A stretch of DNA of 64,000 bases from the NCBI GenBank assembly GCA_020891255.1, contig BQFW01000015.1, positions 2,604,001 through 2,668,000 of the forward strand, written 5' to 3'. Position numbers and translations under genes: made by a program. Below, one piece after another: positions 1,390-14,851 of this stretch. Under the pieces are notes generated by a model. That model saw only the letters and a program-made list of their open reading frames with translations, was not told the origin of the DNA and did not search any database. Each line of letters opens with the position of its first letter. Positions within the stretch are counted from its first letter, which is position 1. Origin of the DNA: Entomortierella parvispora E1425 (taxonomy: Eukaryota > Fungi > Mortierellomycota).

Positions 1390-2706
1390 TTATTTTCTTC
1401 GGTAAACAAGGCTATTGTATTTTATCAGCACCTGAGATGGTGCCCTTGTGCCTACTACAGTCGCGACCTTTGCCCAGTCTCGTCCATGCAGCCTTAAGCC
1501 CTCCCTCAACCGTTCAATTTCCTCTTTTGTCCACCGTTCCCCCTTTTTGAGCATGAAATGAGAAGTAATTCGCTGTTGGCAGCCTTTTGCGGATCTTGCC
1601 CCAACATCCAACGCCACTCGATGCCAGTCCACTGCTTTCATTTGTTCCGGACTGATCTCGGGCCAACACCGCTTTTCATTGAGTTTTTCGTGAGTTCCCT
1701 CTGAACCCTCGCTGAGTGGCGGCTCTTCATTGGTCCTGTTTCCTTGATACATATTGGAAGGGTCGGGGTTGGAGGTCGAGCTCAGTTGGATCCCGAGCTG
1801 GCTGTAAACTGACTTCATCAGCAGGGTATCCTCCTCGTTGGTCCAAGCGCCCGTGGAGAGAAAGGGTCGACTTTCGAGTATTTTAAATCTGATTATACAC
1901 GAGTTTTGATTTCGCGTCATATCTAGACCCTGTCTTTCCTTGGGGTCACTTAGCATGCGGCTGAGTTCATGTCTCCATCGATCTGGGTTTCTCTCCTTCG
2001 CTTTCTGGACAAGATCCTTTAGGATGCTGTCCTCCTCTTCTGTCCAGTGAGTGTCCCGTTTCTTGTGTTTCTCTGTTGTAGTTATAACTCGGCCACCTTG
2101 CTTACTACCTTGGCTTTCTTCTCCCATAGCAAAAGAAGATACTATTCTCTTCTTGTCAATGTCATGAGCGGCTGGACGAAGTCGTGCCAATCGCAACATG
2201 ATGGCGTCCAGCGTTCTGCATGGGAAATGGGTCGTCATCTCCATAGGTGTCGCGCCGGCGTTGTGCATTTCCAAGAGCCTGTCCTTCTCGTCAGAAGTCC
2301 ACTTTTTGAGAGGGATAGATACCCTGATATTGGAAACTTGGCAGATGACGGCTTTACTTGACCGACCAGGAAAGAATGATATGATGGATCGGATGGTGGG
2401 GTTCCTTCCGTCCGAGTAGAAATATTTGAGACGGTCCAATTCATCTTTTGTCCAGGCCACAGGAGTATTCCTGACTGAACGGGGCTTTCTCTTCTTGGGT
2501 TCCATCGGAGGTACGCTTAGGACCGATGCCTGTGGAGCCATGGTTCCATTCCCAGCGACTGGGTTGATAACGCCAACATGAAGGCGATGCGATTGCGACA
2601 ATACGCGCGAGGACGCCAAGGACGGCATGAGATTCGAGGGATGCTTGACGAATGAAAGTCGAGGCCTCACATCAGGCAGGCATCGTGAGCACAATGCAGC
2701 CAACAT
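1390..2706 (-). CDS. Myb/SANT-repeat protein (5 repeats), copy 1, 438 aa
   Basis: Intronless ORF. Repeats start WTKDELDRL, WTSDEKDRL, WTEEEDSIL, WTNEEDTLL and WTKEEIERL...DWAKVATVVGTR, the classic W-T/S-x-E-E-D Myb helix-1 signature. Confidence 0.92.
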   Translation of the reverse strand: MLAALCSRCLPDVRPRLSFVKHPSNLMPSLASSRVLSQSHRLHVGVINPVAGNGTMAPQASVLSVPPMEPKKRKPRSVRNTPVAWTKDELDRLKYFYSDGRNPTIRSIISFFPGRSSKAVICQVSNIRVSIPLKKWTSDEKDRLLEMHNAGATPMEMTTHFPCRTLDAIMLRLARLRPAAHDIDKKRIVSSFAMGEESQGSKQGGRVITTTEKHKKRDTHWTEEEDSILKDLVQKAKERNPDRWRHELSRMLSDPKERQGLDMTRNQNSCIIRFKILESRPFLSTGAWTNEEDTLLMKSVYSQLGIQLSSTSNPDPSNMYQGNRTNEEPPLSEGSEGTHEKLNEKRCWPEISPEQMKAVDWHRVALDVGARSAKGCQQRITSHFMLKKGERWTKEEIERLREGLRLHGRDWAKVATVVGTRAPSQVLIKYNSLVYRRK

Positions 2707-3010: not shown

Positions 3011-4342
3011 TTATATGTTCCTCTTTCGGAGAGTGTAATCGTACTTTGGTTTCACTTGAGACGCTGCCTTTGTACCTACAACAGTGGCCACCTTTGCCCA
3101 ATCTCGTCCATACAGCCTCAAACCCTCCCTCATTCTCTCAACTTCTTCTTTTGTCCACCGTTCCCCTTTCTTGAGCTTTAAATGGGAATCAATTCGATAT
3201 CGACAGCTATTGGCGGTTCTTGTTCCGATATCCAACGCTACTCGATGCCAATCCACTGCTTTCAATTGTTCCAAGTCAATTTCAGGCCAGCGCTCCTTTT
3301 CCCTGCGTTTTTTCAATGCTGCTTTTGAATCTTCCCTCAGTGATGGTCTGTCATCCGTCTGCTCTTGCTGAGCAGTATTTGAATGAAGTTTCGAAGGCGA
3401 GTCCAACTGGATCCCAAGCTGGCTGTATACCGATTTCCTGAGCATGATATCTTCACTTGCAGTCCACCGGCTCTTGGAGATGAATGGCTGTTTTTGGAGG
3501 CGTTCTAATCTCCCGATACACGATTTCTGGGTTCGCGTCATAGCCAGACCCTGTCTTTCCACGGGGTCACATAGCATGAGGCTCAGTTCATAGCTCCACC
3601 GATCTAGATTCCTCTCCTTGGCTTTTTGGACAAGGCGCTCTAGGACGCTGTCCTCCTCTTCTGTCCAGTAAGTCACGGGCTTTCTGAGCCTCTCTGTTGT
3701 AATTATAGCTCCGTCACCTTGCTTACTACCATGATCATCTCCTCCGTTTTCATCCCCCAATACTAAAGGCGATATCATTCTCCTCCTGTCGATGTGATAA
3801 GAAGCTGGACGGAGTCGATTCAATTGTTCCGTGATGGACAGCTGGGTTCTGCCTGGGAAATGAGTCGTAATCTCTAGAGGAGTTGCCACGCCAGCGTTGT
3901 AGAGTTCCAAGAGTCGATCTTTATCTTCAGGACTCCAGTTCTTGCGAGGGATAGGTGTCCTGATCTTGCGAATTTGACTGGCGACTACGTTCCTTGACCG
4001 ACCAGGAAAGAGTGATGAGATTGATTGGATTGTGGGATTCTTTCCGTCTGAATAGAGGTATTTGAGACGGTCCAATTCATCCTTTGTCCAGGGCACACGA
4101 GTCCTTTTGGTTGAAGTTGCCTTTCCCTTGTCAGCGTCAGACTCAGGTGCGGGCGAGACGGAGTCTTGTGGAATCAAAGCTTGATGCTTGGCGAATGAGT
4201 TGGTGAAGCTGACATGGAAAAGTCGCGATTGTGGTGAAAGACGCATGGTTGTCCATGAGACTGCAAATGTTGATGGTCTGTTGATCAATGGCATCCATGA
4301 ACACGCTTTGTGGATGCATCTTGAATGCAACGCAGCTGACAT
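3011..4342 (-). CDS. Myb/SANT-repeat protein, copy 2, about 443 aa
   Basis: ORF 3011..4471. The likely start is MSAALHSRC at 4342, homologous to the other copies; the upstream poly-K comes from a poly(A) tract. Five Myb repeats. Confidence 0.9.
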   Translation of the reverse strand: MSAALHSRCIHKACSWMPLINRPSTFAVSWTTMRLSPQSRLFHVSFTNSFAKHQALIPQDSVSPAPESDADKGKATSTKRTRVPWTKDELDRLKYLYSDGKNPTIQSISSLFPGRSRNVVASQIRKIRTPIPRKNWSPEDKDRLLELYNAGVATPLEITTHFPGRTQLSITEQLNRLRPASYHIDRRRMISPLVLGDENGGDDHGSKQGDGAIITTERLRKPVTYWTEEEDSVLERLVQKAKERNLDRWSYELSLMLCDPVERQGLAMTRTQKSCIGRLERLQKQPFISKSRWTASEDIMLRKSVYSQLGIQLDSPSKLHSNTAQQEQTDDRPSLREDSKAALKKRREKERWPEIDLEQLKAVDWHRVALDIGTRTANSCRYRIDSHLKLKKGERWTKEEVERMREGLRLYGRDWAKVATVVGTKAASQVKPKYDYTLRKRNI

Positions 4343-4590
4343 GGCCGATGAATCCTGTCCTTTGTTGTCCCGATTGTCCTGATCGTGCTGATTGTTCGGC
4401 AGGAAAGAGAGAGAAGGGGTTTTTTTTTTTTTTTTTTTTTTAATTCCCAAGTCTGTGACTTTGACGCACATTCGCGTTTGTGGGTCAAGGCATATCGAGC
4501 CTGGATTGCGTCGCCATGGCTCTTTTTCTCTTATCAGAAAATCTACTCATGTCTGTTGTAAGACTCGACAAAGCGAGTGAGGTTGCCTTT

Positions 4591-5919
4591 TTATTGTTTT
4601 TGTTTTTGTTTTTGACGAGTAAGCCCATTATATTTTATCAGCACCTGAGATGGTGCCCTTGTGCCTACTACGGTCGCGACCTTTGCCCAGTCTCGTCCAT
4701 ACAGCCTCAAACCCTCCCTCATCCTCTTAACTTCTTCTTTTGTCCAGTGTTTCCCCTTTTTGAGCATGAAATGGGAATTAATTCGTTCTCGACAGCCTGC
4801 TGCGGATCTTGCCCCAACATCCAACGCCACTCGATGCCAGTCTACTGCACTCATTTGTTCCGGATTGATCTCCGGCCAACACTGCTTTTCTTTGAGTTTT
4901 TCGTGAGTTCCCTCTGAACCCTCGCTGAGTGGCGGCTCTTCACTGGCCCTGTTTCCTTGATACATTTTGGAAGGGCCAGAGTTGGAGGTCGAGCTCAGCT
5001 GGATCCCGAGCTGGCTGTAAACTGACTTCATCAGCAGGGTATCCTCCTCGTTGGTCCAAGCACCCTTGGAGAGGAAGGGTCGAGCTTCGAGTAGTTCAAA
5101 TCTGATTATACACGAGCTTTGGCTTCGAGTCGTTGCCAGACCCTGTCTTTCCTTGGGGTCACTTATAATGCGGCTGAGTTCATGTCTCCATCGATCTGGA
5201 TTTTTCTCCTTTGCTTTCCGAACAAGACGCTTTAGGATGCTGTCCTCCTCTTCTGTCCAGTAAGTGTTGGGTTTCTTGTGTTTCTCTGTTGTAGTTATAA
5301 CTCGGCCACCTTGCTTACTACCTTGGCTTTCTTCTCCTATTGCAAAAGAAGATACTGTTCTCTTCCTGTCAATGTCATGAGAAGCTGGACGAAGTTGTGC
5401 CAATCGCAACATGATGGCGTCCAGCGTTCTGCATAGGAAATGGGTCGTCATCTCCAGAGGTGTCACGCCGGCGTTGTGCATTTCCAAGAGTCCGTCCTTC
5501 TCGTCAGAAGTCCACTTTTTGAGAGGGATAGATATCCCGATCTTGGAAACTTGGCAGGTGACGGCTTTACTTGACCGACCAGGAAAGAATGGCATGATGG
5601 ATTGGATTTTGGGATTCTTTCCGTCCGAATAAAGGTATTTGAGACGATCCAACTCATCCTTTGACCAATGCACAGAAGTCTTTTTGATTGGAATTGTTGT
5701 TCCCTTGTTAGCCTCAGACTCGTGTGTGGTTGAGACGGATCCTTGTAGAGCCAAGGTTCCATTCCATGCAACTGGGTTGATCACGCCAACATGAAGGCGA
5801 TGCGATTGCCACAAAACACGCGAGGAAGCCAAGGACGGCATGAGATTCGAAGGATGCTCGACGAATGAAAGTCGAGGCCTCACATCACGCAAGCATCGTG
5901 AACACAATGCAGCCAACAT
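4591..5919 (-). CDS. Myb/SANT-repeat protein, copy 3, about 442 aa
   Basis: ORF 4591..5961; start MLAALCSRCL at 5919 by homology; five Myb repeats. Confidence 0.9.
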   Translation of the reverse strand: MLAALCSRCLRDVRPRLSFVEHPSNLMPSLASSRVLWQSHRLHVGVINPVAWNGTLALQGSVSTTHESEANKGTTIPIKKTSVHWSKDELDRLKYLYSDGKNPKIQSIMPFFPGRSSKAVTCQVSKIGISIPLKKWTSDEKDGLLEMHNAGVTPLEMTTHFLCRTLDAIMLRLAQLRPASHDIDRKRTVSSFAIGEESQGSKQGGRVITTTEKHKKPNTYWTEEEDSILKRLVRKAKEKNPDRWRHELSRIISDPKERQGLATTRSQSSCIIRFELLEARPFLSKGAWTNEEDTLLMKSVYSQLGIQLSSTSNSGPSKMYQGNRASEEPPLSEGSEGTHEKLKEKQCWPEINPEQMSAVDWHRVALDVGARSAAGCRERINSHFMLKKGKHWTKEEVKRMREGLRLYGRDWAKVATVVGTRAPSQVLIKYNGLTRQKQKQKQ

Positions 5920-5984
5920 GGTCGAGGATTGACGAAATGTCCTGGAGATGGATGTCCTCATTGTCCTGAATGTCCTGCAGGAAA

Positions 5985-6080: not shown

Positions 6081-6109
6081 TTCTTTCTTTTTCATTTTCG
6101 CCTGGTCAA

Positions 6110-6480
6110 CGAGGGTTGTTTACGTTGTAGCGACAAGAACTGGCGTCTTTGCACCCACTGCAGCTACATCCTTTGCCCAATCAAATCCACTCTTCCCAAG
6201 GCCTTCCTTCAGCTTTTCAACCTCATCTGTAATCCAGTGTTTCCCTTTCTATGGAATTAATTGTTACAACTGTCTTCAGCTCTAGTCCCAACACCCAACG
6301 CCACTCAACGCCAGTCCACTCATTGCTTTCAATTGCTCCAAGTCGATCTCGGGCCGGCGCCCCTTTTCCTCGTGCTTCTTTGATGATGCTCTTGAATCTC
6401 CCCACAGGGGCGATCCATTATCAGTCTGGTCTGATGACCAGCATTTGGATGAAGTTTGGAAGGCGAATAGAACTGGCCAC
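6110..6480 (-). pseudogene. Decayed C-terminal fragment of a Myb-array gene
   Basis: The minus strand reads EEKGRRPEIDLEQLKA (cf. KERWPEIDLEQLKAVDW) and then shifts frame. Downstream it reads WITDEVEKLKEGLGKSGFDWAKDVAAVGAKTP (cf. repeat 5). No N-terminal half is present. Confidence 0.75.
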
Positions 6481-6645
6481 CAAGCGACTGTACTGTACAC
6501 TGGTCACCACAGGAGAGAGAGAAATCAAAAACTCCTTTCTTTTTTTTATCTACGCAAACTCACGTCTGTCGGTGAAGGCAGATCGAATCCGAATCGCATT
6601 GCCATTGCGCTTCTTCGTATCAGAACAGTTATGCATGTCAATTAT

Positions 6646-8043
6646 CTAGGATTGGCAAAGAAGAGAGATGTCAAAGGAAATGTACGATTGGACTTTTTTT
6701 TTTTTTTTTTTGTTTATATACCTCATTTGGCAAATAAGCCTATGGTATTTTGCTTCTACTTGGGATGGTGTCCTTGTCAGTACTGCAGCTGCAACCTTTA
6801 CCCAGTCTCGTCCATACAGCCTCAAACCCTCCCTCATCCTCTTAACTTCTTCTTTTGTCCAGTGTTTCCCCTTTTTGAGCATGAAATGGGAATCAATTCG
6901 CTGTTGGCAGCCTTTTGCGGATCTTGCCCCAACATCCAATGCCTTTCGATGCCAGTCCACTGCTTTCATTTGTTCCGGACTGATTTCTGGCCAACACTGC
7001 TTTTCATTGAGTTTTTCGTGGGTTCCCTCTGAACCCTCGCTGAGTTGCAGCTCTTCATTGGTCCTGTTTCCTTGATACATATCGGAAGGGCCAGGGTTGG
7101 AGGTCGAGCTCAGTTGGATCCCGAGCTGGCTGTAAACTGACTTCATCAGCAGGGTATCCTCCTCGTTGGTCCAAGCACCCTTGGAGAGGAAGGGTCGAGC
7201 TTCGAGTAGTTCAAATCTGATTATACACGAGCTTTGGCTTCGAGTCGTTGCCAGACCCTGTCTTTCCTTGGGGTCACTTATAATGCGGCTGAGTTCATGT
7301 CTCCATCGATCTGGATTTTTCTCCTTTGCTTTCCGAACAAGACGCTTTAGGATGCTGTCCTCCTCTTCTGTCCAGTAAGTCCAGGGTTTCGTGTGTCTCT
7401 CTGTTGTAGTTATAACTCGGTCACCTTGCCTATCACCATGGCTTTCTTCTCCCATTGCAAAAGAGGATACTATTTTCTTACTGTCAATGACATAAGAGGC
7501 TGGACTAAGTCGTGCCAATCGTGACAGGATGGAATCCTGCGTTCTGCCTGGGAGGTCTTTCAGCATCTCTAGAGGCGTCGCGCCGGCGTTGTGCATTTCC
7601 AAGAGTCGATTATCCTCCTCAGTGCCCCACGGTTTGCGAGCAGTAGGCACCTTGAACTTGCGAATTTGAAAGGCGACTGCGTCTCTTGACCGACCAGGAA
7701 AGAATGGTGTGATAGATAGGATTGTGGGATTCTTTCCGTCCGAATAAAGGTATTTGAGACGATCCAGCTCATCCTTTGACCAGAAGGTATGGGTGTTTTT
7801 GGTTTTAGATGCCATTCTATCTTGGGCGTCTGACTCTGGCGTGGTCGAGACAGTTGAGACGGATTCTTGCGGAGCCAAGGTCCCATTCCGTGCAACTGGG
7901 TTGATCACACCGACCTGAAGGCGACACGATTGCGACAAGACGCGCGAGGAAGCCAAGGACGGCATGAGATTCGAAGGTTGCTTGTGGAATGGAAGTCGAG
8001 AACGTACATCACGGAAGCATTGTGAACACAATGCAGCCAACAT
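6646..8043 (-). CDS. Myb/SANT-repeat protein, copy 4, 465 aa
   Basis: Intronless ORF with the same architecture. The C-terminal KKKKKK tail comes from read-through into a poly(A) tract. Confidence 0.9.
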   Translation of the reverse strand: MLAALCSQCFRDVRSRLPFHKQPSNLMPSLASSRVLSQSCRLQVGVINPVARNGTLAPQESVSTVSTTPESDAQDRMASKTKNTHTFWSKDELDRLKYLYSDGKNPTILSITPFFPGRSRDAVAFQIRKFKVPTARKPWGTEEDNRLLEMHNAGATPLEMLKDLPGRTQDSILSRLARLSPASYVIDSKKIVSSFAMGEESHGDRQGDRVITTTERHTKPWTYWTEEEDSILKRLVRKAKEKNPDRWRHELSRIISDPKERQGLATTRSQSSCIIRFELLEARPFLSKGAWTNEEDTLLMKSVYSQLGIQLSSTSNPGPSDMYQGNRTNEELQLSEGSEGTHEKLNEKQCWPEISPEQMKAVDWHRKALDVGARSAKGCQQRIDSHFMLKKGKHWTKEEVKRMREGLRLYGRDWVKVAAAVLTRTPSQVEAKYHRLICQMRYINKKKKKKVQSYISFDISLLCQS

Positions 8044-8216
8044 GGTCGAGGATTGACGAAATGTCCTGAAGTGGATGTCCTGATTGCACTGGGTGTCCCG
8101 ATCGATGGTCTAGCTGGAGAGATGCACTTTGAGCGAAAATTGACACGCGAAATCGACACATCGATCGCGCGTGGCTTAGATCAGAGCCGCGTCTGTCATT
8201 CAAGAGACCATGTCCT

Positions 8217-9557
8217 TTATTTCTTTTCCTTGTTCGCCTTGTAAACCTGGTATCTGTACTTTGAAGCGCACTGAGCTGATGTCTTTGTTCCCACTACAGT
8301 TGCGACCTTTGCGTAGTCTCGTCCGTACTGCCTAAGGCCGTCCTTCAGCTTTTCAACTTCTTCTTTTGTCCAGTGTTCCCCCTTCTTGAGTTTGAAATGA
8401 GAAGCAATTCGATCTCGACAGCCTGCTGCGGATCTTGCCCCAACATCCAACACTACTCGACGCCAGTCCACCGCTTTCAGTTGTTCCCAGCTGATCTCAG
8501 GCCAGCGCTCCATTTCCTGGTATTTGTTTAACGACGCCTTTGAACCTCGCCTCATTGATGATCCGGAATCAGTCTGCACTGTCTGAGTAGTATCTGGATG
8601 TGGTTTGGAATGCGAGTCCAACTGGATCCCAAGCTGGCTACATACTGAGTTCCTCAGTAAGCTATCCTCATATGCAGTCCAAGGGCTCTTGGAGACAAAT
8701 GGCTTTTTTTCGAGGAGTTCTAATCTCGCCATACACGCTTTGTGGGTGCGCACCATAGCTAGACCCTGTCTCTCCATGGGGTCACTGAGCATGAGGCTGA
8801 GTTCATGGCTCCATCGATCAGGATTTCTCTCCTTGGCTCTCTGGACAAGACGCTTTAGGATGCCATCCTCTTCTTCAGTCCAAAAAGTCCTGGGCTTCTT
8901 GAGTTCTTCTGAGGTGACAATAGCCCCCTGGTTCTTCGTGCTACTGTGGTCGTTGACTCCATGATTTTCTTTTCCCAAGACATAATGGGACACCATCCTC
9001 TTCCTGTCGGAGAAATAGGATCGCGGACGAAGGCGGCTCAGTTGACTAATGACGGATTCCTGGGTCCTGCCTGGAAAGTGATTCAACATCTCTATAGTTG
9101 TTTCGCCGGCGTTATAGAGTTCCACGAGTCGAGCTTTCTCGTCCGGGCTCCATTTCTTGCGAGGAATAGGTGCTCTTAGCTTGGAAAGTTGAATGGCGAG
9201 AGCCTTCCTAGATCGTCCGGGAAAGAAGGATGTGATAGATTGGATTGTTGGATTTTTTCCGCCCGAATAGAGATGTTGGAGTCGATCCAGCTCATTCTTT
9301 GACCAGGGCACACGAGTCTCTTTAGGCGGACTTTCCGTCTCCTCTATTGCTTCATGCTGAGGCATGGTAGAGGCCATGCTCTTTGAAGTCAAGGATCGGT
9401 TTCGGGTGAATGACCTGATCAAGCCGGCATGGAAACGTCGTGGTTGTGACAATGCGCGCGAGGGTGCTAATGGAGCCTTTAGATTGAAAGGCCGCCTGAC
9501 GAATGAAAGCCGAGAACGCACATCACGGAGGCATCGTGAACATGATGCAGCCAGCAT
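8217..9557 (-). CDS. Myb/SANT-repeat protein, copy 5, 446 aa
   Basis: Intronless ORF; MLAASCSRCL...QPRRFHAG leader; five Myb repeats. Confidence 0.9.
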   Translation of the reverse strand: MLAASCSRCLRDVRSRLSFVRRPFNLKAPLAPSRALSQPRRFHAGLIRSFTRNRSLTSKSMASTMPQHEAIEETESPPKETRVPWSKNELDRLQHLYSGGKNPTIQSITSFFPGRSRKALAIQLSKLRAPIPRKKWSPDEKARLVELYNAGETTIEMLNHFPGRTQESVISQLSRLRPRSYFSDRKRMVSHYVLGKENHGVNDHSSTKNQGAIVTSEELKKPRTFWTEEEDGILKRLVQRAKERNPDRWSHELSLMLSDPMERQGLAMVRTHKACMARLELLEKKPFVSKSPWTAYEDSLLRNSVCSQLGIQLDSHSKPHPDTTQTVQTDSGSSMRRGSKASLNKYQEMERWPEISWEQLKAVDWRRVVLDVGARSAAGCRDRIASHFKLKKGEHWTKEEVEKLKDGLRQYGRDYAKVATVVGTKTSAQCASKYRYQVYKANKEKK

Positions 9558-9781: not shown

Positions 9782-10350
9782 TTAATAGATAAAAGGGTCG
9801 TTTTGATCCTGCCTGCGGTTACTCTGGTTGCTGCCTTCCTTACTTTGCTCTCCCAGCACAGATGAGACCACCATCCTTTTCTTGTTTGCGAAGTATGATG
9901 CGGGAAGAAGGCAATTCAACTGTGACACAAGAGATTGGTGTGTCCGGTCAGGGAAGTGTTCCAGCATGTCGTATGTGGCCACAACAGCGCTGTGCAATTC
10001 CAAGAGTTTCTCCCTGTCCTTGGGACTCCAGTCAGTTCTTGCGAGAGGGCATGTTCACAGTGGGTATAGATTCGATTGATAAGAGCACGTTTTGACTGGC
10101 CAGGAAAGAGCGCCATGATGGATTGAGGTGTAGGGTACCTTCCGTCTGAGAAAAGGTGTTTGAATAGCTCCTTTTCTTCTTCTGGCCAGGGCACACGTCT
10201 CCTTTTGACTAGAGTTGTTTCCGTCTTCCTTGGTTCTGACTGGGGTATAGATGCGATTGGTCGTTTGTGGCTTTATTCGGCTCATGGCTCAGCGTGGTCG
10301 AGGCTTGCGATAATATACGATAAAAGCACGCCCTGTAGCAGGTGGCCATT
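9782..10350 (-). pseudogene. Frameshifted, 3'-truncated Myb-array copy (N-terminal half only)
   Basis: VPWPEEEKELFKHLFSDGRYPTPQSIMALFPGQSKRAL is repeat 1. An apparent 4-bp ACTG duplication (aagaACTGACTGgagt) shifts the frame before WSPKDREKLLELHSAVVATYDMLEHFPDRTHQSLVSQL (repeat 2). A stop follows the linker. Confidence 0.8.
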
Positions 10351-10650: not shown

Positions 10651-11940
10651 TTATTCCAAATATTCATTTCGGAATTTCATGTAGATCTGCCAAGGCGTCC
10701 TTGTCCCAAGAGCTTGGGAAATCCTGTCCCAGTCGTCTCCATACTTCAAAAGAAGGGATTTCATCGACTCCAGTTCTTCCTTTGTCCACGATCCGACATG
10801 ACGGTTCGTCATCATGTTCATGAACCGTCGTCGGCAATTATATTTATCTCTGCCCCCCATTCGCTCGGACACACTGCTCCAGTCTATGCCTCCTAGTTCC
10901 ATCGAGTGCGGGGCTAGATATCTCTTTTTGGATCGTCCTGCCTTCTTCCCTGGTGTCTCCTGACTGCCCTCATCATTGTCCTTGCTACTTGAAGTGTCGG
11001 CAGCGAGATCAATTCCTGGGTAGAAATTCGGTCCAATCTGAGCTGCCACCGCAGCTCTAAGTAGCTCATCCTCCTCTGCAGTCCAGCGGGCGCAAGCGGG
11101 CAGACCGCGATGCCGCAGTGAGTTCAATCGTTGAATAGCCGTTTTCACACTCCGAGACGGATGCAGCCCTTGTCTATTATCCGAGTTACTCATGAGTCTT
11201 CCCAGCTCCACTTTCCAATGCTCCGGGTCAGCCTTCTTTGCCCTCTGGACGAGTTTTCTCAAAATTTCATCCTCTTCAGCGGTCCAATATTGGGGTTTAG
11301 ACCGGGTGCCATCAGTGTTGACGCTTTCTTTCTTCTCTAAGATTGCTGGCGTCAGCTTCCTGACTGAGCGCCGATGACGAAGGAGTCCCAGCCTGTGGAG
11401 GATACTTAAATGAGTTCTATGCTCAAACGATTTCACCATGTCGATCGGCTCGACACCCGAAGCCTCCAGCGCCAAAAGCCTGTCAATCTCGTCCCGCGTC
11501 CAAGCCCGCCCACGGGTACTCAATTTCAACCTCAATACTTTCGTCTTGAGGGCAGGAAGGGTTCGATCAGGAAATTCGGTCTGAAGCTGGTCTCTGGAGC
11601 AAGACTGGCCGTCTGCAAAGAGCTGAATGAGGCGCTGGGTTTCCTCATTTGTCCAGAGGGCCTTCTTTGAGTCTCCAATCATCGTTTTTGGAATGTTGGC
11701 TGTTTTTAGGCCATTACCAGCGCCCGGTGCTTTGTTGTTCTCGAGAGATGGGGTGCTGATAGTGAAGGACCTACTGTCTGAAGCCGTATTGTTCTTTGCT
11801 ACTTGGCGCGTGTTGGAAAAGGTCCAACCGGGAAAAAGGTGTCTAGGCGATGCTGCCGTAGCTAGAGAACATGTCGATGGACGGAGTACGGCTGGTACAC
11901 AAATGCTGCGGATGCATCGGGGATGGAGTATGGTCAACAT
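10651..11940 (-). CDS. Myb/SANT-repeat protein, divergent copy 6, 429 aa
   Basis: Repeats WTNEETQRL, WTRDEIDRL, WTAEEDEIL, WTAEEDELL...IDWSSVSERMGGR and WTKEELESM...DWDRISQALGTR; Arg-rich, acid-free N-terminus. Confidence 0.88.
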   Translation of the reverse strand: MLTILHPRCIRSICVPAVLRPSTCSLATAASPRHLFPGWTFSNTRQVAKNNTASDSRSFTISTPSLENNKAPGAGNGLKTANIPKTMIGDSKKALWTNEETQRLIQLFADGQSCSRDQLQTEFPDRTLPALKTKVLRLKLSTRGRAWTRDEIDRLLALEASGVEPIDMVKSFEHRTHLSILHRLGLLRHRRSVRKLTPAILEKKESVNTDGTRSKPQYWTAEEDEILRKLVQRAKKADPEHWKVELGRLMSNSDNRQGLHPSRSVKTAIQRLNSLRHRGLPACARWTAEEDELLRAAVAAQIGPNFYPGIDLAADTSSSKDNDEGSQETPGKKAGRSKKRYLAPHSMELGGIDWSSVSERMGGRDKYNCRRRFMNMMTNRHVGSWTKEELESMKSLLLKYGDDWDRISQALGTRTPWQIYMKFRNEYLE

Positions 11941-12906: not shown

Positions 12907-13578
12907 ATGGACCCCTTGAAGACCACAGAAAAAGATGAATCAGGAGTACCCAATTTCAAGACGTCTCTCAAGACAAAGATCCGACGAGCCGTCTTTGTCC
13001 TCGTCTTGATCCTCCTCCCCCTCGACATCACCAACCTGATCCAGGCCACCAACATGAGCTGCTTCTGGGTACTCTCCCCGACCTTTCAGGGGCTTGCTAC
13101 CATCGCGGTGGATCTCATGTTGCTCTGCATTCACTATCCCAGAAAACTGACACCAAAGACCGAGAGGCTCTATGGGCGATTGGACTATGGGAATATCTTT
13201 TGGCGGTTCACTGTCTTAGCCTTGACGTTGGTGTGGCCTGTCCGAGAGATTATCACGACAGGACAAATCACTCAACCCGTGGGTAATGATTGTCAACGGA
13301 ACCTCAGCCACGTATCGTCGTTAGGGCGGGATGTCACGATGCGTGCAGGTGGACCGGGAGTGTTGGACTTGATCCCGGTGTTGAAGGTGGCTCGAGCAAG
13401 GTCGAGTGTCTGCATTGCCGTGAGTCTGTTCTTGACTTATGAACTGATTCTTTCGTACAACGACCGGCGGGCCAGGATCCGGAGGGACAAGCCCTTGAGG
13501 CAGCAGGCAGAGAAGGCTGCCGCGGTGTCCAGTACCGGTACCGACATTGAGCTGTCGGAGGTAGAGACTCGCACGTAG
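12907..13578 (+). CDS. Uncharacterised multi-pass (about 4 TM) membrane protein, paralog 1
   Basis: 223-aa ORF with four hydrophobic segments. Shares QATxxxCF, GNIxWR, WPxxE, DLIPxLKVxRxRxS and a C-terminal DxIEL motif with 14108..14851. Confidence 0.8.
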   Translation: MDPLKTTEKDESGVPNFKTSLKTKIRRAVFVLVLILLPLDITNLIQATNMSCFWVLSPTFQGLATIAVDLMLLCIHYPRKLTPKTERLYGRLDYGNIFWRFTVLALTLVWPVREIITTGQITQPVGNDCQRNLSHVSSLGRDVTMRAGGPGVLDLIPVLKVARARSSVCIAVSLFLTYELILSYNDRRARIRRDKPLRQQAEKAAAVSSTGTDIELSEVETRT

Positions 13579-13850: not shown

Positions 13851-13914
13851 TTTGTTCCTTTGTTCCTTTGTTCCTTTGTTCCTTTGTTCCTTTGTTCCTT
13901 TGTTCCTTTGTTCC
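13851..13914. repeat. Microsatellite (TTTGTTCC)8
   Basis: Counted directly in the sequence. Confidence 0.95.
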
Positions 13915-14107
13915 TTCCTTCGTCTCTCCTGGAACTACCCACAACAAACAAAAAGTCGCCATCTTTCTTTCTTCTTTTCTTTTTGCATTCATCTCTTTGT
14001 CTTTTGCTATCCTCATTCACTCTCATTCACTCTCAATCACCCTCATTCACTACCTGCTCCTTCTCTCTCACGTACTCTCTCTCACTCCCATTTTTATCCT
14101 TTCCACC

Positions 14108-14851
14108 ATGCTATACTTTTCTAAAGATGCACGGATCAAAGAAGACCCTCGTGTCAGGATCCACCGCATCCTCTTGCTCTTTTCCCTCGCCCTCTTTGCT
14201 TTTGACATCTACAACGTTGTCCAGGCCACCCACCTCGCCTGCTTTACTGTTCTGGATCCTCTCCTGCAAGGTTTCGCCACCTTGGTCCCCGACTTTGCCC
14301 TTGCTCTGGTCTATTTGGCTCAACTCAAGCGACATGCCCAGAACCGTCAGGAACTCGCGGCGCAAAAGAAGCCATACTTTTGGTTCTCGTTTGGAAACAT
14401 CCTCTGGAGACTTGTCTTGTTGGCCGTGTTCTGGTTCTGGCCCTTCAAGGAGATGGCCATGACCCGTGAAATCACGTATCAGTCCCTCGAATACAACAAC
14501 TGTTCCACGGGTTCAGAAATAGAATCGGTCGACGGTCGATCTGTCATTGTGAGTTTTGGGGGCCTGACCGTGGCGAAGGACCTCATCCCGTTCCTGAAGG
14601 TGACCAGGGTGCGGACGTCGATTGGTTTTGCGATGGGGGCCTTGATGCTCGTGGAGATGGCGCTCTCGGTCGTCGCTCGCTTCAGCAAGGTGCGTGTGGA
14701 GCTCCGGAAGGCAAAGGACCTGAAGGCTGCTGCTCAGTCAGAGAGAGCACTCGAGGAAGCTGCTTCTTCTGCCGCCGTCACTGGTGCCGATATCACGAGA
14801 TCATCCTCCACAGTGGTGGACAACATCGAGTTGGGGTCTCGACGAGTCTAG
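14108..14851 (+). CDS. Uncharacterised multi-pass (about 4 TM) membrane protein, paralog 2, 247 aa
   Basis: The likely start is ccaccATG at 14108; the upstream part of the track ORF is microsatellite-derived. Motifs are shared with 12907..13578. Confidence 0.8.
   Translation: MLYFSKDARIKEDPRVRIHRILLLFSLALFAFDIYNVVQATHLACFTVLDPLLQGFATLVPDFALALVYLAQLKRHAQNRQELAAQKKPYFWFSFGNILWRLVLLAVFWFWPFKEMAMTREITYQSLEYNNCSTGSEIESVDGRSVIVSFGGLTVAKDLIPFLKVTRVRTSIGFAMGALMLVEMALSVVARFSKVRVELRKAKDLKAAAQSERALEEAASSAAVTGADITRSSSTVVDNIELGSRRV

Follow-up and report, generated by a model that had tools for sequence, protein, structure and literature searches.

The first 12 kb of the stretch analysed here, a window of 64,000 nucleotides from the genome of the soil fungus Entomortierella parvispora, are occupied by a head-to-tail array of genes on the minus strand, each encoding a protein with Myb repeats. 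Each gene also opens with a short segment that looks like a mitochondrial presequence. The locus thus raises the question of whether a family of nuclear-encoded Myb proteins is carried into mitochondria. An earlier note on this DNA had answered that it is, and had compared the array to the clusters of organelle-targeted PPR proteins with which plants suppress selfish mitochondrial genes. Below we consider what the leader is made of, where it might send the protein, what the protein would do there, how the array has evolved, and whether the leader is translated at all.

The gene array

Seven paralogues of a protein with five Myb repeats lie in the window, one of them cut by the window edge, together with two relics (Table 1). 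The intact copies are intronless open reading frames of 430–465 residues, each with all five repeats. A further family copy, P0007, lies outside the window, for a total of at least eight. By sequence the leaders fall into two types: copies A, C, D and E have type I, copies 0 and B have type II. The segment from which the question arose, 2560–2706 on the minus strand, corresponds to codons 1–49 of copy A.

Table 1. Features of the Myb-repeat gene array, in window coordinates
Feature	Position	Strand	Leader	Leader ATG	Description
Copy 0	1–1154	−	1020–1154, type II	1154	Gene cut by window edge; A-type body
Copy A	1390–2706	−			438 aa; intronless ORF; Pfam Myb_DNA-binding 9.9e-23
Copy A leader	2572–2706	−			Codons 1–45; 1 acidic residue; net +4 in first 40 residues; ends R-L-H-V
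Tandem 9-mers, (A/T)TCAGGACA	2740–2765	−			Just upstream of copy A leader ATG
Copy B	3011–4342	−	4208–4342, type II	4342	443 aa counted from conserved ATG; leader ends R-L-F-H
Copy C	4591–5919	−	5785–5919	5919	442 aa counted from conserved ATG
Relic 1	6084–6518	−			From tblastn; C-terminal fragment, without leader
Copy D	6646–8043	−	7909–8043	8043	465 aa; C-terminus reads through poly(A) tract
Copy E	8217–9557	−	9423–9557	9557	446 aa; most Arg-rich leader (net +8), ends R-R-F-H
Relic 2	9800–10257	−			From tblastn; residues about 62–211, without leader
Copy F	10651–11940	−	about 11827–11940	11940	Divergent (29% identity to the others); two in-frame deletions in leader

On a related metagenomic contig (L001), a single orthologue is found between the genes for tRNA isopentenyltransferase (IPPT) and S-adenosylmethionine decarboxylase (SAMDC). 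Both genes are also present in the window, at about 17.7–21.0 kb, and since L001 has only one copy in this shared neighbourhood, the array is a local expansion, and a recent one. The loci in Linnemannia and Mortierella polycephala are without the IPPT/SAMDC neighbourhood.

Composition of the leader

An alignable leader of about 45 residues opens all seven copies and three metagenomic orthologues, P0002, P0008 and P0009, which are 47–50% identical overall. For composition statistics seven roughly independent sequences were used (A, B, E, F and the three orthologues). Asp and Glu account for 3 of 315 residues at leader positions 1–45, compared to 359 of 2788 in the remaining protein (binomial P 2.5e-15), and the ratio of Arg to Lys is 38:4 in the leader compared to 264:230 elsewhere (Fisher P 1e-6). 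Over their first 40 residues, the ten close members of the family (the seven window copies and the three orthologues) have a mean of 0.6 acidic residues and a net charge of +4.6; the corresponding values for 119 other Myb proteins found in the same exhaustive profile search are 4.3 and +1.0. A simple home-made presequence rule was passed by nine of the ten family members and by 28 of the 141 other best Myb matches. The leader thus has the composition expected of a presequence: it is N-terminal, net positive and nearly without Asp or Glu, contains more Arg than Lys, and is rich in Ser, Ala and Leu. The earlier description of an acid-poor leader, rich in Arg, Ser, Leu and Ala, on every copy is confirmed, far beyond chance, and the peptides quoted with it agree with the translations.

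The most conserved feature of the C-terminal part of the leader is the motif R-x-[F/L]-H. It had been likened to the sites cleaved by the processing peptidases MPP and Icp55, and it is real, occupying aligned positions 40–43 in six of the ten sequences (copies 0, B and E and the three orthologues). In the remaining four it is shifted or degenerate: copies A and C have R-L-H, displaced by one residue, copy D has R-L-Q, and copy F has R-H-L-F. The canonical residue at +1 of such sites is Ser, Ala or Thr; His at +1 of the putative leader site is non-canonical. An R-10 pattern is present in copies A (R34-V-L-x-x-S), C and D and in P0008. Processing motifs of all these kinds are short and carry little information. 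Most type I copies have Asp at position 12. The maximum 11-residue hydrophobic moment gives no separation of leaders (0.61) from controls (0.56), and the leaders contain several prolines.

Where the leader might send the protein

Similar N-termini are found outside the close family. Distant relatives in Mortierella polycephala, Podila humilis, Gryganskiella and several Linnemannia species are colinear with the array proteins and have N-terminal extensions of 50–170 residues; these fall outside the alignment made by the family HMM but again contain few acidic residues and much Arg, and several have R-x-[F/Y/L]-[S/T] at positions 42–60. A sister Myb subfamily around P0087, represented in many Mortierellaceae species, has a leader of about 45 residues with few acidic ones, and at its end stands a strongly conserved R-R-F-Y-[T/S]-P-S. 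This we take, from yeast N-proteome studies, to be a textbook R-3 pattern, cleaved by MPP and then Icp55. Among the 28 rule-passing proteins mentioned above, the origin of ten was looked up. Three are from other early-diverging fungi (Acaulospora morrowiae, Calcarisporiella thermophila and the chytrid Quaeritorhiza haematococci), two are from Mortierella species, and five are metagenome or Logan sequences.

A feature search of the ESM Atlas with the leaders of copy E and P0009 returned, as named neighbours, small imported organelle proteins: IATP (the ATPase inhibitor), Mt_ATP_synt, ATP_sub_h, COX5B, YGL041W-A, RbcS and CP12. The scores were about 0.5, which by the tool's own grading makes them a lead only. 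The first 50 residues of a generic nuclear Myb protein, P0004, served as a control and had Myb clusters as their only neighbours. Structure matches for the leader in the Atlas had TM values below 0.5 and were set aside as meaningless. An AF2 model of copy E predicts that residues 1–81 are disordered (pLDDT about 33, below 50).

Several other roles for the N-terminus were considered and rejected. A zinc knuckle formed by the N-terminal C/H-x2-C would have ligands that vary among copies (C-x2-C, H-x2-C, H-x2-Y, H-x2-H) and a second pair that is not fixed. When compared by eye, no leader fits the nonapeptide consensus of the peroxisomal PTS2. Uncharged hydrophobic stretches, as in a signal peptide, are at most about seven residues long (MLAALCS). 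The twin Cx3C/Cx9C motifs of Mia40 substrates are absent.

Composition, purifying selection on the leader (see below), the relatives, the R-3 motif and the language-model neighbours all favor the earlier proposal that these Myb proteins are targeted to mitochondria, which stands as a prediction of localisation. We estimate the probability that the leader functions in mitochondrial targeting, possibly with dual targeting to the nucleus, at roughly 0.6. The gene product would then be a nucleic-acid-binding precursor with Myb repeats and a cleavable, matrix-targeting presequence of about 43–45 residues at its N-terminus. The leader would be recognised by TOM20/TIM23 for import, and MPP would cut after the residue that follows the conserved Arg, perhaps with further trimming by Icp55 (R-3 type) or, in copies A, C and D, by Oct1 (R-10 pattern). 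The mature protein so released would consist of a disordered linker of about 35 residues followed by five Myb repeats, and would bind specific sequences in mtDNA or in mitochondrial RNA. By analogy only, it might plausibly serve as a promoter, terminator or replication-barrier factor on mtDNA, work that mTERF proteins do in other eukaryotes; alternatively it might bind RNA, as do the Myb repeats of Cdc5/Cef1.

The array genes could instead encode ordinary nuclear Myb transcription factors. Their conserved, basic N-terminus would then be disordered and serve regulation or localisation, perhaps as a degron, as a contact site for a partner or as a signal for the nucleus or nucleolus, and its likeness to a presequence would be superficial. 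The nearest characterised relatives, SNAPc4, c-Myb, Reb1 and TTF1, are all nuclear, and the conservation of the leader across species, at 40–49%, is rather high for a presequence. The genes might be autoregulated through Myb sites formed by the tandem 9-mers in their own 5′ regions, and the proteins would then act in the nucleus. An NLS-like PKKRKPR is present in copies A and 0 and in P0007, but it is missing from C, E, F and P0009, and no classical NLS conserved across the family was found. Nuclear and nucleolar signals are clusters of Lys and Arg, unlike a segment that starts at Met1, is free of acidic residues, is rich in Ser, Leu and Ala, and has Arg and Lys at about 9:1. Against this explanation there is also the recurrence of the same chemistry on non-homologous N-termini of distant relatives, the canonical R-F-Y/[T/S] site of the sister subfamily, and the language-model control, which distinguishes the leaders from a nuclear Myb N-terminus. 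A purely nuclear role is, in our judgment, unlikely; some copies of a mitochondrially targeted family may nevertheless reach the nucleus too.

The mature protein

Pfam models PF00249/PF13921 matched all six of the proteins tested with 72–92 bits (cutoff 24.4; E 1e-20 to 1e-26), and the Trp residues are invariant, with Myb-type spacing. The AF2 model of copy E, which was built from 16 homologues, has a mean pLDDT of 64 and contains five three-helix units with pLDDT 70–94, as well as disordered spacers at residues 182–223 and 315–349, the second of which lies inside repeat 4. The best profile matches in the PDB were 7xur_A (E 7e-28) and c-Myb 1h88_C (1.7e-20), and Foldseek matched 7xur_A at 1e-4. 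Judged by its sequence and predicted fold, the mature protein is a tandem Myb array of the c-Myb/SNAPc4 type.

SNAPc4 (SNAP190) and c-Myb likewise have multiple consecutive three-helix Myb repeats with regular spacing of Trp, but these proteins are nuclear, have no leader resembling a presequence and are conserved throughout the eukaryotes, whereas the array family is confined to Mortierellaceae. Its two long disordered spacers and the loop of about 35 residues inside repeat 4 also set it apart, and outside the repeats it is not colinear with SNAPc4. Orthology to SNAPc4, which would call for a colinear Rh-Ra-Rb-Rc-Rd block and for regions that interact with SNAPc, was rejected: the best PDB stretch covers only repeats 4b–5, and the search for full-length relatives found them in Mortierellaceae and none outside that family.

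Reb1, TTF1, Rtf1 and eta2 are also multi-Myb, sequence-specific binders of double-stranded DNA, and the AlphaFold Swiss-Prot search matched them at E 2e-4 to 1.5e-2. They differ in acting on nuclear rDNA, and no MybAD or termination domain was identified in the array proteins. The match to 5eyb is weak (Foldseek E about 0.09, TM about 0.2; profile 1.3e-5, no stretch passing alone), and membership in the Reb1/TTF1 group was rejected because the similarity is weak and confined to the level of the repeats. A polar terminator or barrier on mtDNA would be a plausible functional counterpart of these proteins.

Evolution of the array

The array copies are mosaic, or gene-converted. Between copies 0 and A, dS reaches 1.5 over the leader and only 0.06 over repeats R1–R2, which points to a recombination junction at the leader/mature boundary of copy 0. 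When pooled over paralogues, dN/dS of repeat helices 1, 2 and 3 is 0.18, 0.58 and 0.87. Among the structured parts it is thus highest in the recognition helices (helix 3), with the variation at exposed positions. No region had dN/dS above 1, in pairwise estimates pooled over copies that recombine and are not independent. The recognition helices are where the copies mainly differ, which suggests diversified target specificity and fits relaxed constraint after duplication equally well. Between genera, the family is only 20–25% identical, a sign of fast turnover.

It had been suggested that the array could be a system of mito-nuclear conflict or mtDNA surveillance like that of plant Rf-type PPR proteins, with binding to mitochondrial plasmids or mobile introns as an alternative. 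Carried further, this would be an arms race in which mitochondria-targeted Myb copies diversify to bind and silence selfish mitochondrial elements such as plasmids, mobile introns or chimeric ORFs. Plant Rf-like PPR clusters are likewise tandem, and encode repeat proteins whose specificity-determining positions change fast and which are targeted to organelles, as is predicted here; PPRs differ in being RNA binders with documented mitochondrial targets and documented positive selection. The circumstantial evidence for such a conflict is the lineage-specific tandem expansion (at least eight copies and two relics, compared to one gene on L001), the mosaic or gene-converted state of the copies, the contrast between recognition helices at 0.87, with variable sites exposed, and helix 1 at 0.18, and the fast turnover between genera. 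Against it, no value exceeded 1, the pooled estimates come from non-independent, recombining copies, and relaxed constraint explains the pattern equally well. An arms race also presupposes the mitochondrial localisation that is here a prediction. We consider it improbable.

Is the leader translated?

The frame that encodes the leader is free of stop codons in all seven copies and in the L001 orthologue, the other two frames contain stops, and the indels in the leader preserve the frame. Among paralogues, pooled dN/dS is 0.40 in the leader compared to 0.76 in the adjoining linker. Amino-acid identity to the orthologue is 40–49% in the leader, 19–28% in the linker and 49–62% in the repeats, and pN is below pS both within and between species. 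For a presequence, the leader is fairly well conserved across species.

The leader ATG, with A at −3, has no in-frame ATG before it in four of the seven copies; the upstream ATGs in copies 0, B and C are not conserved. Paralogues and orthologue share the start context catcgaCCATG. Tandem 9-mers equivalent to those upstream of copy A are found upstream of other copies at 4366–4383, 5953–5970 and 8062–8102, and also upstream of the L001 orthologue, in a run that spans about −15 to −60 of the leader ATG. They are probably a conserved 5′ element that positions the promoter/5′UTR relative to this ATG. In copies B and C, open reading frames of 486 and 456 aa extend upstream of the conserved ATG, with a K-run in B that is derived from poly(A). 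Since these upstream extensions are not conserved, the conserved Met is the likely start in both copies.

Database protein models disagree about the start. The model of copy E (P0005) includes the whole leader, that of copy B (P0006) begins at Met33, that of copy F (P0001) at Met87, and P0007 at the equivalent of Met17, so that one of the four modelled copies retains the full leader. The downstream Mets chosen are not shared among the copies, and the leader is part of the metagenomic gene calls P0002, P0008 and P0009. Exact translations of copies A, C and D had no match in the protein collection, and copy 0 was absent among the homology matches. We read the discordant starts as choices of start codon made by automatic pipelines. 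Because the gene models truncate the leader in most copies, predictions of localisation made with database proteins would miss the signal.

On the evidence of sequence, translation of the leader and purifying selection on it are both supported. A start downstream of the leader, which the earlier note had named as counting against its reading, is not supported, given the open frame, pN below pS and the conserved context of the ATG. That the leader is 5′UTR or promoter DNA, with translation beginning at a downstream Met as in the P0006, P0001 and P0007 models, is very improbable in view of a frame that is open in every copy and the orthologue while the other frames have stops, of in-frame indels, of pN below pS at both levels, of a conserved ATG and context, of model-chosen Mets that differ between copies, and of a copy E model and three metagenomic calls that include the leader.

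Other organellar nucleic-acid binders

In our reading of the literature no mitochondrial family of Myb-repeat proteins was found; the nearest case is the MYB-CC factor APL of Arabidopsis, of which a GFP fusion was seen in both mitochondria and nucleus (PMC3457046). APL is a precedent for a Myb-type factor in mitochondria. It differs in being a plant factor with a single Myb domain and a known nuclear role, not a multi-repeat family with a conserved N-terminal presequence.

mTERF proteins have been reported in all eukaryotes except fungi (PMC7826268). If the leader works as predicted, the array proteins would resemble them as nuclear-encoded, presequence-bearing, helical-repeat binders of organellar DNA or RNA with lineage-specific expansions. 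The mTERF fold and repeat are unrelated to those of Myb, and the array proteins have no Pfam match to mTERF.

Implications

Fungal mitochondria are generally considered to rely on few DNA-binding factors with sequence specificity. Presequence-like multi-Myb proteins similar to those of the array occur in Glomeromycota, in Calcarisporiella and in one chytrid. It is possible, and we put it forward tentatively, that Myb-repeat arrays form an unrecognised class of mitochondria-targeted, sequence-specific nucleic-acid binders in early-diverging fungi, filling the niche of mTERF and PPR proteins, with expansions that track fast-changing elements of mtDNA. Such a class would cover several subfamilies in Mortierellaceae. 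If the proteins are imported, they would constitute a new class of factors for organellar gene expression or genome maintenance, diversified by tandem duplication. If true, this would also offer a way to test how mitochondria and nucleus have co-evolved in Mortierellaceae, and the Myb fold would reach further than has been known.

A mosaic copy and the gene models of the array

In copy 0, the array member cut by the window edge, the boundary between the presequence-like leader and the mature protein is the position of a recombination junction. Compared with copy A, this gene has a B-type (type II) leader joined to an A-type body; dS between the two falls from 1.5 over the leader to 0.06 over repeats 1–2. 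Copy 0 was absent among the homology hits, and for copies A, C and D exact-match look-ups of the translated sequences found no entry in the protein collection. The database models of B, F and P0007, a further copy outside the window, start at internal methionines (Met33, Met87 and the equivalent of Met17, respectively), and the leader is thus wholly or partly lost from them. The frame of copy D passes the usual stop and continues through a poly(A) tract, adding about 25 residues that include a lysine run, which may be the onset of decay.

Upstream repeats and neighboring genes

Two to four tandem units of the 9-mer (A/T)TCAGGACA lie 15–60 nt 5′ of the start codon of every copy, and also precede the orthologue of another species, on a related metagenomic contig (L001). 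Exact matches within the window are nearly all confined to the 5′ regions of array copies. They may act as a promoter or 5′UTR element, or alternatively as a site of Myb autoregulation. Neither of two similar hydrophobic proteins encoded by adjoining ORFs in the window had any Pfam match.

Coordinates of the features discussed (window unless stated)
Feature	Position	Strand
Copy 0 leader	1020-1154	minus
Copy A leader	2572-2706	minus
Copy B	3011-4342	minus
Copy D read-through	6646-6720	minus
Copy F	10651-11940	minus
Tandem 9-mers	2740-2765, 4366-4383, 5953-5970, 8062-8102; L001 ~2190-2245	
Hydrophobic-protein ORFs	12907-13578, 13868-14851	plus
Two-gene set with P0023 (Mortierella polycephala, L004)	6522-7435, 8001-9557	

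Relatives in other Mortierellaceae

A sister Myb subfamily represented by P0087, with shorter proteins of about 360 residues, occurs in Mortierella, Linnemannia, Haplosporangium and Podila. Downstream of its acid-poor leader the sequence R-R-F-Y-[T/S]-P-S-[L/I/F]-T-T-S-Q-L-Q is strongly conserved; no other candidate MPP/Icp55 site in this set of proteins is as clear. The gene of P0023, a distant relative, is adjoined by a shorter one with a faint Myb match, and small tandem sets may therefore exist in further genera too.
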